A stretch of DNA of 61,917 nucleotides, counting the filler, from Choristocarpus tenellus KU-1152 (lineage: Eukaryota > Protista > Phaeophyceae): NCBI GenBank assembly GCA_964200185.2. It is 7 parts of 7 records of this genome, joined end to end, with 100 filler letters (N's around TTAATTAATTAA, not from the genome) between each part and the next. Parts side by side here need not be neighbours in the genome. Positions count along the whole stretch, not along the records: positions 53,213 to 58,253 come from CAXNAD020012073.1; 6 more parts are not named here. One strand, 5' to 3'. The notes below the pieces were generated by a model that saw only the letters and a list, made by a program, of their open reading frames with translations, did not search any database and was not told the origin of the DNA. Numbering within the stretch: position 1 is the first letter of the stretch; the number at the start of each line of letters is the position of its first letter. The position numbers and the translations under genes were made by a program. Below, piece by piece: positions 51,372 through 58,253 of this stretch.

Positions 51372-54300
51372 GTGTGTGAACTGTTTGTGATTGGTCAGTG
51401 GATTGCTGTTGATCTAGTTTTTATTTATGTCGGGGGTGAGAGTTGGGATTATTCTGTTTATTTTTACGGTGTACTTTTTTATTTTGGTTTTCAACAAAAA
51501 AACTATATGATAACTCTTGATTTTTTGTTGAAGTGATGGTTTTTTGAATTGACCTAACTTTTGGTTAGAGTGAAAGTACTTGCTTTTGTAAGTGTGGATA
51601 CAAGGACGTGCTGGGATTTTTTTTGTCTTGCACAATCTAAAATGTGTTAGGGTTGGGGAATGGAATATTTATGAGTGCTATTTATAGTATGGTATGGTAC
51701 ATTATTGTTTGAAATCGTCTATGTAACACATTTATGTGGACGATCAGTGGATGAGACTTTACTTTTTGTAGGAAGATATCTGTGAAATATTTGTATTTAT
51801 CTCCATTGGGATAATGGTTCAATGTGTAATATTGATTTCCTGGAGTTGTTATTATCAGAAGGCTGTTTCTTGTAATCATTGATTTTTTCATTTTTTTCAT
51901 TGTGGAGCCTCGAGATTTTTTTTTTTAATGATGGGATAGGATGGGATTTTGAAATGGTCCGTTACAAACTGCAGTTATCTTCGATGTTTTTTTTCCCCCA
52001 AAGCCTTCATTGAATCGGGCCAATTACGGTACTACTTTCTGGAAAGTCAGGTTCAGTGCCATCAACTGATTCCAAGTTGTGTTGTGTGAGTTTCCAGTAT
52101 TTTTAAGAGATTAAGTAAGAGATACGGACCAGGATAGTTCAGGTATATCTGTGATAGTCGTGGTCCTGTCAGAGAACCAACCCTGTTCCCAGTACTTGGA
52201 CAAGTCCAGTCCAGTCCAGTCCATGACTATCCAGTGGGATTCGATCCCAGATCCCCTGGTTTTTGTCAATTTTTTAATTTTTTTGCCGGGAACTGTTTCG
52301 CCGGAGTAGACTGTCAATTTGTAGGGTTAGGGTTGGGGTTGCCAGGCCTCTAATTTTGTGAAGTGTATTAGATACTCCTGGTCCACCTGAGTTAGACGGT
52401 AGAGATGTGTTTGGTAGATTGTAATCATTTACCCTAATGGAACAGTTGCATGTCAATGTTTGGTTTCTGCCTGCCATCTGGTCCATAGGCCGGCCTGGTT
52501 CCTGTTGTTTTGTCATGATAGGTTCGGTCCAGTACTGGGAACTACTTCTGTGGTCTGGTCTGGGGTCCAAACCAATTCCCAGTGTTTCTGCATTGTGGTT
52601 GGTAGACCAGGCTGTGGTTCTGGACCTTGTTAGGTTGTGGATGATATGCCACCCGACCCAATGGACTGTTTTTTTTTATTTATTCTGTGTATTAGGGTTA
52701 GGGTTAGGTTGTGGTAATGTGTAAGATATTGAGGTACCTACAGTGGTGATCCTCTTTTTTTTAATGTGTAAGATATTACACCAGTGTTGTCCCCTCCCTC
52801 CTCCCCCGTTTGTACCAATCACTTAGGGGCATACTCTTTTTTGTCAATCCCTTGATTGTCTTCCTGGTATTATTATTGTATCACGAACATTGTGTGTTTA
52901 TTGTTTGATTTAGAAATAATAATAAGGGTTAGGGTTAAGACAGTGTAATGATATGCTTATAACATCATCGGTATATGTATATATTATATATTATATTATA
53001 TATGTATATATACCGGTGTATCAGGAGAACCTTTACCGTTCATACTGACCCACTTTAGTTTACCCCCCCCACTCCCCCCCCCCCCCCCCCCCCCCTCGTC
53101 TTCTTTTCTTCTNNNNNNNNNNNNNNNNNNNNNNNNNNNNNNNNNNNNNNNNNNNNTTAATTAATTAANNNNNNNNNNNNNNNNNNNNNNNNNNNNNNNN
53201 NNNNNNNNNNNNTTGTGACCCCCCCCCCCCCCCCCCCCAGATACTTTGGGTCTGGAACTGTTTGCCACCAAGGACTGCTCATCATGATATCCCAACCAGG
53301 TGAGAAGGGTACCAGTTGCTTCAAAGTAGAAGTACTGGAAGGCGAAGGCAATCAACCGTATTCCATGAAGAAAAATGTAGATCAGCAACAACACATGCAA
53401 CAAGTCATCGACTCTGCAGCCTTGCTCATAGCAAATAGATCAAACAAACAGAAAATCCATGCATATTTGTCCTTGGGCCTTCCTCCTACATGTCAATGAC
53501 CAAGCAAGATCAACGAGCAAAGTATGACAAGCTCGTTTTGGGATATCGCTATTGAATATTAATAATTTGTAGCTGCATTGTCAGGTAGATGAACGGAGAG
53601 TGTGCATTGTTCTAGTATTTTCATTTGAGGTCTGTAACACAACAAAAGTGTATTCTACATTGTAATATAGCTCTCAGATAAAATGCATTTTGCCCTTCGA
53701 TATACTACGCTGCTCCACTCATGTATGCTGAGAGCTCCTCCTCTAGTACCTTGTGCCCCCCACCGCCTTTTATTTCGTTTTACTATAGTAGTTGCACACT
53801 GTGAGAATGCCATACATAGTAATTGAGGAAATTGTGGATCAGTCTCAAATTCAAACTTCTAAAAATTTACGTGCGTACTAATTGTATCATAATAAAAGAT
53901 GAAAACCATGGAGACATATTAGATAACATTCTCTCAAGTAGATATTTGAAGGTATAGAATGTGATGCAGTTGGTGCCACCTCAACAAGTATTCTCTTTTT
54001 ATAGCGTATCATATATCAACTATACAGCACACATGGGCTGTAGTGATTTCGTAGGGGCGATCAGGGGTGCTGTCTCCCAGCTTTTGGTGATATATCCCTG
54101 AACAGACTAGGATGTAATACATTCTTTCATTGAAAGCACTCTCCAGGACCATTCCACGAAATGTCCTCCTGTTTTGATGTTGGGAGTCAAAAATGAATTT
54201 TACGCTCTCTCGTCTCCATTCGTCGCAAGAGATGGTATGCCCTTCATGCAATGGATCAAGTGTAATGGAACATGTGTCTTATATTATTTCGCCATTTATA

Positions 54301-54996
54301 GAATACTCAGGTGAGGCCAACAGTCAGTTTGGTGTCTAGGGTGACACGAGCCAAGTAAACAACACACCATATACTGTTCGACCCACAGTCTATGTAGATA
54401 CAAGACCACCAGTCAGAGTTGACAAGAATATTACACAGGGCGCTGCTTTTGTCTCCATCATCACTATGTTTATCCAGTACCTACACCTTCCAAACTTGGG
54501 CACCAAAGTCACCCCCACAAGAGCGCAGCACAACAGTGTCATCAAATACATCCCCAGAAAGGTGGCCGTACTGGTTCACTAAAACTGAGGCCGTTCTAAC
54601 AATCAGTTTTTGTTGGCACGACATTTAGCAACTCTAATATGTTGCCGGAAAAGCTCCAGCAAGGAAAGATTTCAGCACAACACGAACTGAGCAAACCAAA
54701 TTGTCCCTCATTCAAATAGCATGTCCTATGGTGCAACACAACCTCACACACACACAAAAAGGCTCTATTTTCACTCCCCACTTCCCACCGAAGTTTGCTG
54801 AGCTTTTCCTGACAATCCCCGACTGATAATTTCATCCCGTTGAAGGGAGTTCATAACCCAGTGATACATACACCAGTCGCACAGGAATCTTGTCGACTCA
54901 GACTGAGCTCTCCTCATACCCATCATAATAAGACCAGACGTCTGAGGGCATTCACACCAAACTTCAACATGCTACATGAGGCTAACTACTTCCTAC

Positions 54997-57368
54997 CGAG
55001 CTCATTGCCTTCGAGGTGGAGGTTTTTAAGTCTGGTAAGCTCACCCAACTCCTTTGGGATCATGCCTGTTATGTGCATGTTCAGGGGATAGGGATTGCGT
55101 CAAGAAATTGTGGAAACATTGCCCCAAGTTATATGAGTTTGAACATGCAACAACTCGGTTTGTTCCCAATCCTACATGCCTAAGCGATGAAGGTTGATAA
55201 AAAGTTGAGATTGGAGCCAAGATTAAGTCAGTAGGGGATATTGCAGGACAAATTAATCTATTTGGTTTATAGGCATAAAGGATGATTCCATTGGTGCAGA
55301 AACGAAAGAAAAAAAATAATTGTGAGAAGCGAGTATGCCACCCTAAAATAAACTCAAGGTATGATGAGGGTATTGCACTTCTATAGATCCTGGGATGAAA
55401 AAATATAAGGTAGAAATACCTATGATAGCTCTCGTCTATACTAAAGGCACTCCTTTAATCCTCAGTATAGTTTCATATGTTGCATTTTTGTATCATATCC
55501 TCCATCCATACTCTAGATGTACCATTTTGTATCATTCTAATTTTTTTTCAGTATTAACATGACGTGTGCTTTAAACATAGAAGGAAATATTCTTGTAGGT
55601 CAACTCACCGCTCAGCTGGTTGTGTTCCAGGTGGAGTTCTTGGAGGACAGCAAGTTCACCGAGCTCCTTCGGAATCGTACCTGTGTAACAGTGAAGGATT
55701 CCCAACAATGTGGCAAAGAAAAAGATGTTTTCAACTTGTTACTATGTAGTACTGCTAACTCAGCAACGATGGGTTGAGAAGTAAGGTCTGCCTCCCAAAC
55801 TTGTGCTTCTTTCTCTACAACAGTAGTTCACAAACCTGATATTGTCTACTCTTTGTTTCCTCAAGTTGTTGTGGCACCAAAAACGGCACTCACCTCAACA
55901 AAAATTGCTGACCCTATCACAATGATCAATCAGGCAATACGCCTTCACAGATTATTGTAATACTGCTCCATGTATTTTCTGCTCTCAATAGATCCCAAAT
56001 TGCCAAATTAGAAAAGAGCACAAGAATGTGTAGATATTATGCTAACTACCGCTAAGCCGTAGCAACAGAATAAAGAAGACTGTTATGGATGTGAGAGTGA
56101 GATACGGCAAAGTCCATCGGTGAAAATGTCGATAATACTTCCAGAGCATCTTCTACCCCTCAAGCCTTGCGCCATATCGTATTGATGCCATTCAAAAGGT
56201 CTAAATAACTGACTCACCTCCCAGTTGATTGCATCCCAGATGAAGTTCCTTGAGGTTGCTCAGGTTCCCCAATTCTCTGGGAATAGGACCTGGACGGAAA
56301 AGAAAAAATCAAACTAAGATGATGGTAGGACCAGCAGTCACAACCATAAATGCTGGAGAGGGGCTTGTATCAATGCCATTGGAGGACTTCGTTGCACACT
56401 ACATAAAACATTAAATGACCAGCCTTCAGGTGTGTTCCACATGAGAAAACCTATTTGGTGTTCATGAAGAGCCAATAGGTGACAAGGAGCTACTTGTGAT
56501 TAGTTAGAAAGAGAAATTCATCATGTCATCCTAATCGCACTCTCAAGTCATGCGTTAAAAAAACATCATTGACTGAATAAGGTTTTTTGTTCATTGTATA
56601 CTTACAGGCAAAACTAGACCACTGAGATAACCTCAGACCTAAAGTATCTGAGGGGGTTGGGGGGTCTACACCAGGGTGTCCATTTGAGCTAAAACCAGGA
56701 AAAGTGCACTTACATTATCCACCCGACGTATGCAACCAAATCACCCAAAAATTGCGACATGGAAAAAATGGACCCCAAATGGACACCCGTCACCCCCCCC
56801 AGATACTTTGAACCTCACAGATTAAGTATGTTATGCTTAAAAGACAAAGCAGTGAGAGCTATACCAGGGTGTACAAGAACATCGGACAAGTACCCAGATA
56901 TTGGTGGTTTTCTGAAAACACAAGTATAACTGCACTGTAGGAGAGAAAAATAAACTTGAAAGCAGAAGTTCATAGGACTGCCAATGACAACACCTTTTAG
57001 CACCAACAAATAGGACTGGTGCACCTTAATGCAAGCAGCCACGTGACCCTAAATATGGCCTTTCTTTTCCACCATTGAAGGCACATCCAGTCTATAGACC
57101 AGTGGGCATACCATGTGCATTGTTCGCTACACAGTGTTCAAAGACTAAAAAACCATACAACCCCTTGATACCAACCCTCGAGAACTATCCAGTCCATTGC
57201 TTATTACCTGTCCTGCTGAACCTCCAAGTTGACATGGTGCCGAAAGGTGAAAAGAAATGATAAGCAAATAGTAACACTTGGCAAAAGCTGACTCACCACT
57301 CAGTTGGTTCTCCCCCAGATCGATGAACACCAGTTTACACAGATCACCCAGCTTGTTGGGAATAGGGC
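54997..57368 (-). CDS. Leucine-rich repeat protein with one 24-aa LRR per exon (partial gene)
   Basis: Phase-1 exons with intact AG/GT: 57297-57368 GPIPNKLGDLCKLVFIDLGENQLS; 56218-56289 GPIPRELGNLSNLKELHLGCNQLG; 55609-55680 GTIPKELGELAVLQELHLEHNQLS; 54997-55065 (69 nt) GMIPKELGELTRLKNLHLEGNEL. Confidence 0.9.
56636..56814 (+). mobile_element. MITE family B copy inside the LRR gene
   Basis: Both TIRs present; flanked by a TCA/TCA duplication. Confidence 0.92.
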
Positions 57369-57619
57369 CTATTCATGGTTCAACATAAATTGCCATACTT
57401 GGCTGGTTAATACACTAAATAAACAACAGAATGAGTGCTGCTAATGACACAGCTTGATGGCTTGTGGCACAAGATGTACCAGGGCCTCTCTCTCTCTTAT
57501 ATCACATTTCTCCTACACCAACAACAGTCGTAGGTACTAATGCCACCACTACATACATGTTTACAATCAGGGTTTAGTACCCCCACAATATCGCAGGAAA
57601 CTACATGCAACATACTTAC

Positions 57620-57691
57620 CAGCCAGAAGATTATTTCACAGGAGGAGTGTTTCAAGGTTGGTAAGTCCCCCAACCTCCTTGGTAATGACAT
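57620..57691 (-). pseudogene. Disabled 72-nt LRR exon
   Basis: DVITKEVGGLTNLETLLL*NNLLA; acceptor CGG instead of CAG, in-frame TGA, donor GTAAGT intact. Confidence 0.8.
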
Positions 57692-57886
57692 CCGTGTGGG
57701 AAACACAGGTGTCGATTCCAGATCATTTCAGATAAACGAATGCATCACCCGATCAGTGTTTAGATACGAACAAGTTCCTTCAAACAATCTAGGACCAACT
57801 CAACTCTACTTCACCCACTACTCTATCCTGAAGGAACATGAGGAAGCCATGAGACTACACCAAGGTTACTACAAAAAGTGGCTCAT

Positions 57887-57958
57887 CGGTCAACTGATTG
57901 CATTGCAAGTGGAGTTCCTCAAGAGCAGTGAGTTCACCCAACTTCTCAGGAACACTCC
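57887..57958 (-). pseudogene. Silent 72-nt LRR exon (open frame, both splice sites non-canonical)
   Basis: GSVPEKLGELTALEELHLQCNQLT; acceptor CGG, donor ATGAGC instead of GTGAGC. Confidence 0.82.
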
Positions 57959-58093
57959 CCGAGTAAAATTGTACACCAAAAATCAAAATGGTCAAAAAGA
58001 TTGAAACAACTACCAAACACCATGGTGCTGAGAATGGGATATTGAGCCAAGTCTGAGCAGGACAGGGATTAAACTTCACGTTTTGTATTGTGT

Positions 58094-58137
58094 TGTCTCA
58101 AGGTTGATTAGTCCACAAATTTCCTTGGGGATGACAC
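58094..58137 (-). pseudogene. Truncated LRR exon
   Basis: tag|GVIPKEICGLINLET, after which LRR similarity is lost; a MITE lies 2 nt upstream of the acceptor. Confidence 0.7.
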
Positions 58138-58141
58138 CTAT

Positions 58142-58253
58142 GAGTGAAAGTATCTTAGAGGGTACGAGTTTTGCCCTGTTTGTCCATTTGGGGCTTGGCT
58201 TTCCATGGAGTACTTATATGACATTTTACCTACTCCAAAACGTTTTGGAGTAG
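58142..58253 (-). mobile_element. MITE family A copy 7 (cut by contig end)
   Basis: GAGTGAAAGTATCTTAGAGGGTACGAGTTTTGCCCTGTTTGTCCATTTGGGG matches 29015 onward. Confidence 0.88.

Follow-up and report, generated by a model that had tools for sequence, protein, structure and literature searches.

The DNA studied here is a window of 61,917 nucleotides (the whole stretch that was analysed) from the genome assembly deposited for Choristocarpus tenellus KU-1152 (GCA_964200185.2). It consists of seven parts joined end to end, and our analysis concerns the genomic piece at positions 53213-58253 (CAXNAD020012073.1), which carries an array of leucine-rich repeat (LRR) units, all of them on the minus strand. 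The piece has a GC content of 42%, and other recognisable coding content is absent apart from the LRR units; a Pfam scan of its other open reading frames (ORFs) gave 0 domain matches. The units, here termed U1 to U7 in the order in which they are read, and the parts between them are listed below with coordinates that count along the whole stretch (X3 is one of three public sequencing runs described further on; MITE stands for miniature inverted-repeat transposable element).

58095-58137, minus strand: U1, a truncated silent unit that has kept its AG acceptor and reads GVIPKEICGLINLET, followed by divergence and a stop
57887-57958, minus strand: U2, a silent unit of 72 nt with an intact ORF, having GG instead of AG at the acceptor and AT instead of GT at the donor
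57620-57691, minus strand: U3, a silent unit of 72 nt with GG instead of AG at the acceptor, an in-frame TGA and a retained GTAAGT donor
57369-58253, minus strand: part of the intron upstream of U4, which carries U1-U3 and runs past the end of the piece
57297-57368, minus strand: U4, a 72-nt LRR exon bounded by AG and GTGAGT, whose upstream partner exon lies outside the piece
56290-57296, minus strand: the U4-U5 intron, 1007 nt, GT..AG, holding a complete MITE-like element (56633-56815)
56218-56289, minus strand: U5, a 72-nt LRR exon bounded by AG and GTGAGT, with a joint in X3 that skips 55681-56217
55681-56217, minus strand: the U5-U6 intron, 537 nt, GT..AG, removed in X3 contigs
55609-55680, minus strand: U6, a 72-nt LRR exon bounded by AG and GTGAGT, with X3 joints skipping both 55681-56217 and 55066-55608
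55066-55608, minus strand: the U6-U7 intron, 543 nt, GT..AG, removed in X3 contigs
54986-55065, minus strand: U7, the terminal coding exon, with an AG acceptor, the last LRR, Gly-Arg-Lys and a TAG stop at 54988-54986
54384-54985, minus strand: the 3' untranslated region (UTR), about 600 nt with an approximate end, covered by X3 contig 54384-55066

A scan of both strands with a profile of the unit recovered exactly these seven units, and 0 LRR units were found on the opposite strand. U1 fits the unit model over positions 1-43 only, and it was still recovered (E 7.5e-5) when it had been left out of the profile. The initial annotation, made from the sequence alone, had likewise counted seven units on the minus strand, and this count is borne out. 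The motif LxxLxxLxLxxN occurred 5 times in the six frames, compared to a mean of 0.054 and a maximum of 2 in 500 shuffles. In each unit the opening two bases finish a Gly codon and the final base opens the next one, showing that the exons are symmetric and the introns of phase 1. The split Gly codon is present in every unit, so that phase 1 throughout and frame-neutral modularity, both part of the initial annotation, hold. Within the intact units G1, P4, L7, L13, L18, N21 and L23 are invariant, at position 16 four of the five aligned units have L and U4 has I, and the units conform to the 24-residue plant-type consensus LxxLxLxxNxLxGxIPxxLG. A protein profile of five intact units matched plant-type LRR ectodomains in PDB with E values from 1e-47 to 1e-11; the Pfam LRR scores of single exons were sub-threshold, which is what a lone repeat should give.

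Three public runs of one study (X1, X2 and X3), stored as contigs and of a kind that is not on record, cover the locus. X1 and X2 had a broadly even depth on the non-repeat parts (mostly about 20-35 and 6-9, respectively) and behave as DNA. The depth of X3 was very uneven, ranging from 0 to about 1900 outside repeats, and this unevenness together with intron-skipping joints suggests that X3 is RNA. The X3 joints skip 55066-55608 and 55681-56217, both with GT..AG on the minus strand and at a depth of about 1400, demonstrating that U5, U6 and U7 are joined in transcripts. The X3 contigs on the intron side ended 28-29 nt inside U5, U6 and U7, and the same was seen at both edges of U4; breaks at this distance are the pattern expected from a 31-mer graph at a branch between spliced and unspliced sequence. 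The X3 depth bin at U4 was also raised and, as judged by break points and depth, U4 seems to be spliced to U5 on one side and, on the other, to an exon that lies past the contig end. No break was seen at U1, U2 or U3, where the X3 contigs 57340-57842 and 57835-58164 run through unbranched. The RNA-like contigs support the use of four units and the non-use of three. Together with the splice-site defects listed above, they uphold the claim that the three upstream units are disabled and the other four intact.

With regard to the end of the gene, the X3 contig 54384-55066 (depth about 1720, at least that of the splice joints) is unbranched at 54997 and passes through GGTAGG, which had been taken as the donor of a 69-nt U7. 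The reading frame behind the LRR of U7 ends in ...NELGRK, followed by the stop at 54988-54986. Since the contig reads through the supposed donor into this stop and the 3' UTR, U7 is the last coding exon and not an internal exon of 69 nt; the other sizes that had been assigned, exactly 72 nt for U2-U6 and a truncation for U1, are correct. As the transcript ends after U7, the LRRs are C-terminal in the product with nothing behind them. X3 depth is zero at 53889-54226. The 3' UTR contains TGTAA at 54431-54435 on the minus strand, about 50 nt before the end of the X3 contig, as the sole candidate motif of polyadenylation type, and neither AATAAA nor ATTAAA occurs in it. Contigs cannot reveal RNA ends, so both the motif and the contig end are to be taken as tentative.

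All three runs contain a second version of 57835-58037, which differs by 13 substitutions and a 3-nt deletion (93.5% identical). When these changes were put into the sequence, AG and GTGAGT came to lie exactly at the boundaries of U2, and the encoded peptide became GSIPEKLGELTALEELHLECNQLTG, with V replaced by I in the xIP motif. This twin of U2 shows the exon-edge break pattern in X3, and in one X3 contig a U2-like exon is followed at its end directly by the start of the twin exon, which means that two near-identical LRR exons are spliced in tandem. The twin and the tandem joint show that the family is multicopy and expressed, with very recent exon duplicates. Moreover, since a twin this similar keeps both splice dinucleotides and is spliced, the loss of both from U2 must be recent. 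U3 and U1 are older relics than U2, bearing a stop codon and a truncation, respectively. In X1 the depth at the U2 segment was 23 for the reference version and 26.6 for the alternative one, compared to 20 in the flank (depth being unreliable for short contigs); this favours a paralogue rather than an allele.

We consider it probable that the locus represents the 3' end of a nuclear, expressed gene from a eukaryotic multicopy LRR family built from symmetric, phase-1, 72-nt one-repeat exons, each of which encodes a single turn of the LRR solenoid, and that U1-U3 are decayed former exons. The C-terminal LRR arc of the product may serve to bind a ligand or partner. The best-supported mechanism is a birth and death of exons in evolution, in which exons would be duplicated and lost through unequal recombination and splice-site decay, presumably in the order of duplication, splice-site loss and decay. 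The symmetric phase would keep each gain or loss of an exon in frame, and copies of the family would hence differ in their number of LRRs. On this reading U1-U3 are former exons at different stages of decay, relics and not a donor library. The locus provides a transcript-supported snapshot of the ordinary form of this process, with exons in use, one exon that was silenced recently and whose twin is still live, and older wrecks.

U2 and U3 might instead be conditionally used cassette exons, included by alternative splicing. Their inclusion would be frame-neutral owing to the symmetric phase, and alternative splicing of LRR exons does occur in brown-algal ROCOs (PMC11378527). However, U2 is flanked by GG and AT, U3 by GG in addition to its TGA stop, the 25-40 nt inspected ahead of U3 contain no AG, and the X3 contigs cross both units unbranched, so we regard this as highly improbable.

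Several points weigh against the locus as an expressed gene with decayed former exons. No joint between U4 and U5 is among the 15 joints listed, the splicing of U4 being read from break points and depth, and the assignment of X3 to RNA is itself an inference, since the runs are contigs of unrecorded kind. The second version of U2 may be an allele, although depth favours a paralogue. Finally, the X3 depth over 56261-58164, which takes in the U4-U5 intron and the region upstream of U4, is about 320-450, roughly a quarter of the exon depth, compared to about 40-50 (about 3% of exon depth) over the U5-U6 and U6-U7 introns; the raised coverage could reflect intron retention, slow splicing, a locus that is partly non-functional or a second transcript. 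A rival reading takes the locus as a pseudogene, i.e. a transcribed, truncated remnant of the family in which the array has been deprived of its downstream or upstream part, the U7 donor has decayed and the RNA is non-functional. The depth of about 25% upstream would agree with this, as would the three decayed exons and the MITE-like insertions, one of which abuts the U1 acceptor. In addition, U7 is one codon short and has GRK-stop where a donor would be expected (GGTAGG compared to GGTGAG). On the other hand, the ORF and the consensus residues are kept in four consecutive units, AG and GTGAGT are perfect in three of them, the two introns tested are removed in most molecules, and X3 covers the exons at high depth. 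Kelps, moreover, are known to have LRR-only genes that contain exons of this type (PMC11378527). A remnant of this kind therefore seems unlikely to us, and an expressed gene remains the preferred reading.

The initial annotation had further proposed that the silent units might donate sequence in gene conversion or shuffling. Compared in pairs, the units are 36-68% identical and share identical runs of 10 nt at the most, and their 40-nt intron flanks show identity at random level only, except for the splice sites. U1 and U3 share a somewhat longer stretch (56 nt at 75%). Because no identical run exceeds 10 nt and the flanks are unrelated, conversion tracts that would link silent units to live ones are absent, the donor role is not borne out, and the units of the locus are old duplicates. 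Silent LRR copies, in other words, need not serve as a donor library. All listed joints of the DNA-like runs X1 and X2 involve the repeat element, and no other rearranged joint is among them.

It had also been claimed that the scaffold is conserved and that the exposed xxLxLxx positions differ. The first part is confirmed, scaffold positions being 93-95% identical among the units. The exposed positions, however, vary no more than the others: the five x-positions of xxLxLxx have a mean pairwise identity of 0.23-0.26 compared to 0.23 at other x-positions, and most units have E at position 15 and H at position 17. This comparison, which includes 5 units only and is a weak test, lends no support to diversifying selection on the concave face.

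The base composition bears on the identity of the host. The observed/expected ratio of CpG is 0.38 over the piece and 0.29-0.52 in every sub-region, and TG and CA are in excess (1.34 and 1.29, respectively), a composition which suggests CpG methylation in the germline. Most brown algae are without DNMT1, and Discosporangium and two sister taxa keep it. The depletion argues against a brown alga lacking DNMT1, though not against Discosporangium or its sister taxa, and the brown-algal origin that had been assumed is unproven and, as far as typical brown algae are concerned, disfavoured by this ratio together with the GC content of 42%; Ectocarpus differs from the present genome in both respects.

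Single-repeat LRR exons are well described in brown algae. The type I LRR exons of Ectocarpus are 72 nt long, encode the motif GxxPxxLxxxxxLxxLxLxxNxLx and are accompanied by non-coding or inactivated LRRs in introns (Zambounis et al. 2012, PMC3341825); besides ROCO genes, 46 further loci that encode neither ROCO proteins nor kinases contain them (PMC3341825). Nt 3-71 in this register code for 23 residues, and the domains of brown-algal ROCO proteins follow the order LRR-ROC-COR (Teng et al. 2024, PMC11378527). Kelps also have LRR-only genes with type I exons, somatic recombinants have not been reported, and the sites for which positive selection is reported in brown algae include positions 15 and 17 (PMC11378527). 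The present locus resembles the Ectocarpus and kelp type I exons in its 72-nt one-LRR exons, in which a Gly codon is completed by the first 2 nt and 23 residues are encoded by nt 3-71, in conforming to the same motif, in its inactivated intronic LRR copies and in belonging to a multicopy family with recent exon duplicates. The initial annotation was accordingly right to place the array with its silent intronic copies among the one-LRR-per-exon loci of Ectocarpus type. The layout has already been described in brown algae, and the locus adds another example of modular LRR exons in the type I register. In contrast to Ectocarpus type I loci there are no LRR copies on the non-coding strand, and in contrast to the brown-algal type I exons positions 15 and 17 are mostly conserved.

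These similarities raise the question of whether the gene is, as had been proposed, a brown-algal immune receptor of LRR-ROCO type, with the silent repeats as conversion or shuffling donors in the manner of the variable lymphocyte receptors (VLRs). The exons agree fully with Ectocarpus type I in length, register and motif, those loci are characterised by non-coding LRRs within their introns, and the multicopy family with near-identical tandem U2-like exons in mRNA would also agree with it. However, the transcript stops 3 codons after U7, so the LRRs here are C-terminal, whereas the ROCO order is LRR-ROC-COR. No ROC-COR or kinase domain was found downstream of U7, where the piece has a stop, a 3' UTR and no Pfam domain (the 5' part of the gene lies beyond the contig). 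Silent and live units share no identity tract longer than 10 nt, the opposite strand is without LRR units, a CpG ratio of 0.38 fits the typical DNMT1-less brown algae poorly, and the 2024 study itself remarks that reports of somatic recombinants are lacking (PMC11378527). A ROCO-type receptor with a donor library is for these reasons most improbable in our view.

The comparison with the VLRs of lamprey and hagfish fares no better. Judged by the summary of these in PMC3341825, the only likeness is the idea of unexpressed LRR modules adjoining an expressed LRR gene. Here, in contrast, the germline gene is complete and conventionally spliced, the silent units are decayed and without homology tracts, and there is no sign of somatic DNA joining, nor of rearranged joints outside the repeat element among those listed. 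Programmed receptor assembly has left no sign at the locus. Human NLRP3, an NLR, likewise has strictly modular LRR exons that permit in-frame skipping, according to PMC6642158, but it belongs to another gene family, and no alternative skipping was seen at the present locus. Tetrahymena has arrays of 90-bp, phase-2 LRR exons (PMC6564038), which share with our units the clonal expansion of single-repeat exons of equal length and phase, attributed to unequal crossing over; they differ in length (90 bp), phase (2), LRR class and the AT-rich ciliate genome in which they lie.

Land plants provide a further parallel. Rice LRR kinases have 72-nt LRR exons whose introns are of phase 2 and fall within the codon for the first Leu of xxLxLxx (PMC3050792), and BAK7 has a 72-bp LRR exon (PMC12780178). 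The units at our locus share with them the plant-type 24-residue LRR, the 72-nt single-repeat exons and frame-neutral skipping, but their phase-1 introns split the Gly before xIP, and a kinase or transmembrane part is missing. A receptor kinase or receptor-like gene of land-plant type, similar to SERK, must nevertheless be weighed, as the best PDB matches are plant LRR ectodomains, plants do have LRR exons of this length (PMC3050792, PMC12780178), and the GC content, the CpG depletion and the abundant MITE would suit a plant genome. Against this stand the intron position (phase 1 in Gly, compared to phase 2 in the first Leu of xxLxLxx in rice) and the uncapped LRR end without a transmembrane or kinase part downstream. 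The similarity of the repeats gives no lineage either, as bacterial surface proteins hold equally close ones. An exhaustive profile search with aligned single exons gave 40795 matches with giant multi-repeat proteins at the top, and eight of the top matches by score per repeat had bacterial-type partner domains (Calx-beta, Big_2, subtilase, fn3, hydrolase) and no ROC-COR, their best single repeats being 67-79% identical to the units. As the repeat is near the generic class consensus, its similarity carries no signal of lineage or family. The look-alikes found in the Atlas were generic LRR clusters of green algae, diatoms, plants and bacteria. A word search with a 74-aa ORF around U2 yielded no candidate relative, and exact-protein look-ups of three ORFs of the window gave no match. 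We judge a land-plant-type receptor to be improbable and retain the multicopy family with exons in the type I register.

Phase-symmetric single-repeat LRR exons allow a binding domain to vary in length without a frameshift, and such exons have been proposed earlier as a path to receptor diversity in brown algae. The aspects of the present locus that remain of note are the pair of a live and a dead U2 and a host that may lie outside the typical brown algae. Combining the two, one may envisage a CpG-methylated genome, probably not that of a core brown alga, with an expressed multicopy family in the type I register in which an exon that is live in one copy or allele has been silenced by paired splice-site mutations in the other; in this full form we put the idea forward as a doubtful one. 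If it is true, exon birth and death of the Ectocarpus type would extend beyond the lineages where it is known, and a host that does not belong to the typical brown algae would broaden the range over which this gene architecture is known. If the two U2 versions are alleles, individuals would carry receptors that differ in LRR number through an on/off polymorphism of an exon.

A further sequence difference was seen at 58079-58085, where X1 has nothing but a variant (G inserted behind 58079 and G>A at 58085) and X2 and X3 have the version of the window. As X1 differs from X2 and X3 at these positions, the samples differ genetically. A 154-aa open frame at 57540-58004 on the plus strand is antisense to U2 and U3. 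Pfam gave no match for it, the protein collections contain no record of it, and it is most likely a by-product rather than a gene. Scans of the piece with Rfam and for tRNAs gave nothing real (one sub-threshold small nucleolar RNA match), scans for bacterial promoters and terminators stayed at background level, and a poly-C run alone was returned by a search for tandem repeats.

The MITE-like element is about 185 nt long and is present as the complete copy at 56633-56815 and as partial copies at 58141-58253 and 53213-53254. It has imperfect terminal inverted repeats of about 45 nt, which start around CAGACCYAAAGTATCTG followed by a run of G, and it folds as a hairpin (z = -3.8). Two metagenome scans with its conserved parts gave no match. 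The summed contig depth on the element is 10^5-10^6, compared to about 21 for unique sequence, indicating that it is extremely abundant in genome and RNA. The contig ends within the element on both sides, and one copy ends 3-4 nt upstream of the U1 acceptor. Inside the terminal repeat at one contig end lies a run of 20 C at 53219-53238 (G on the minus strand), which is a likely cause of the assembly break.

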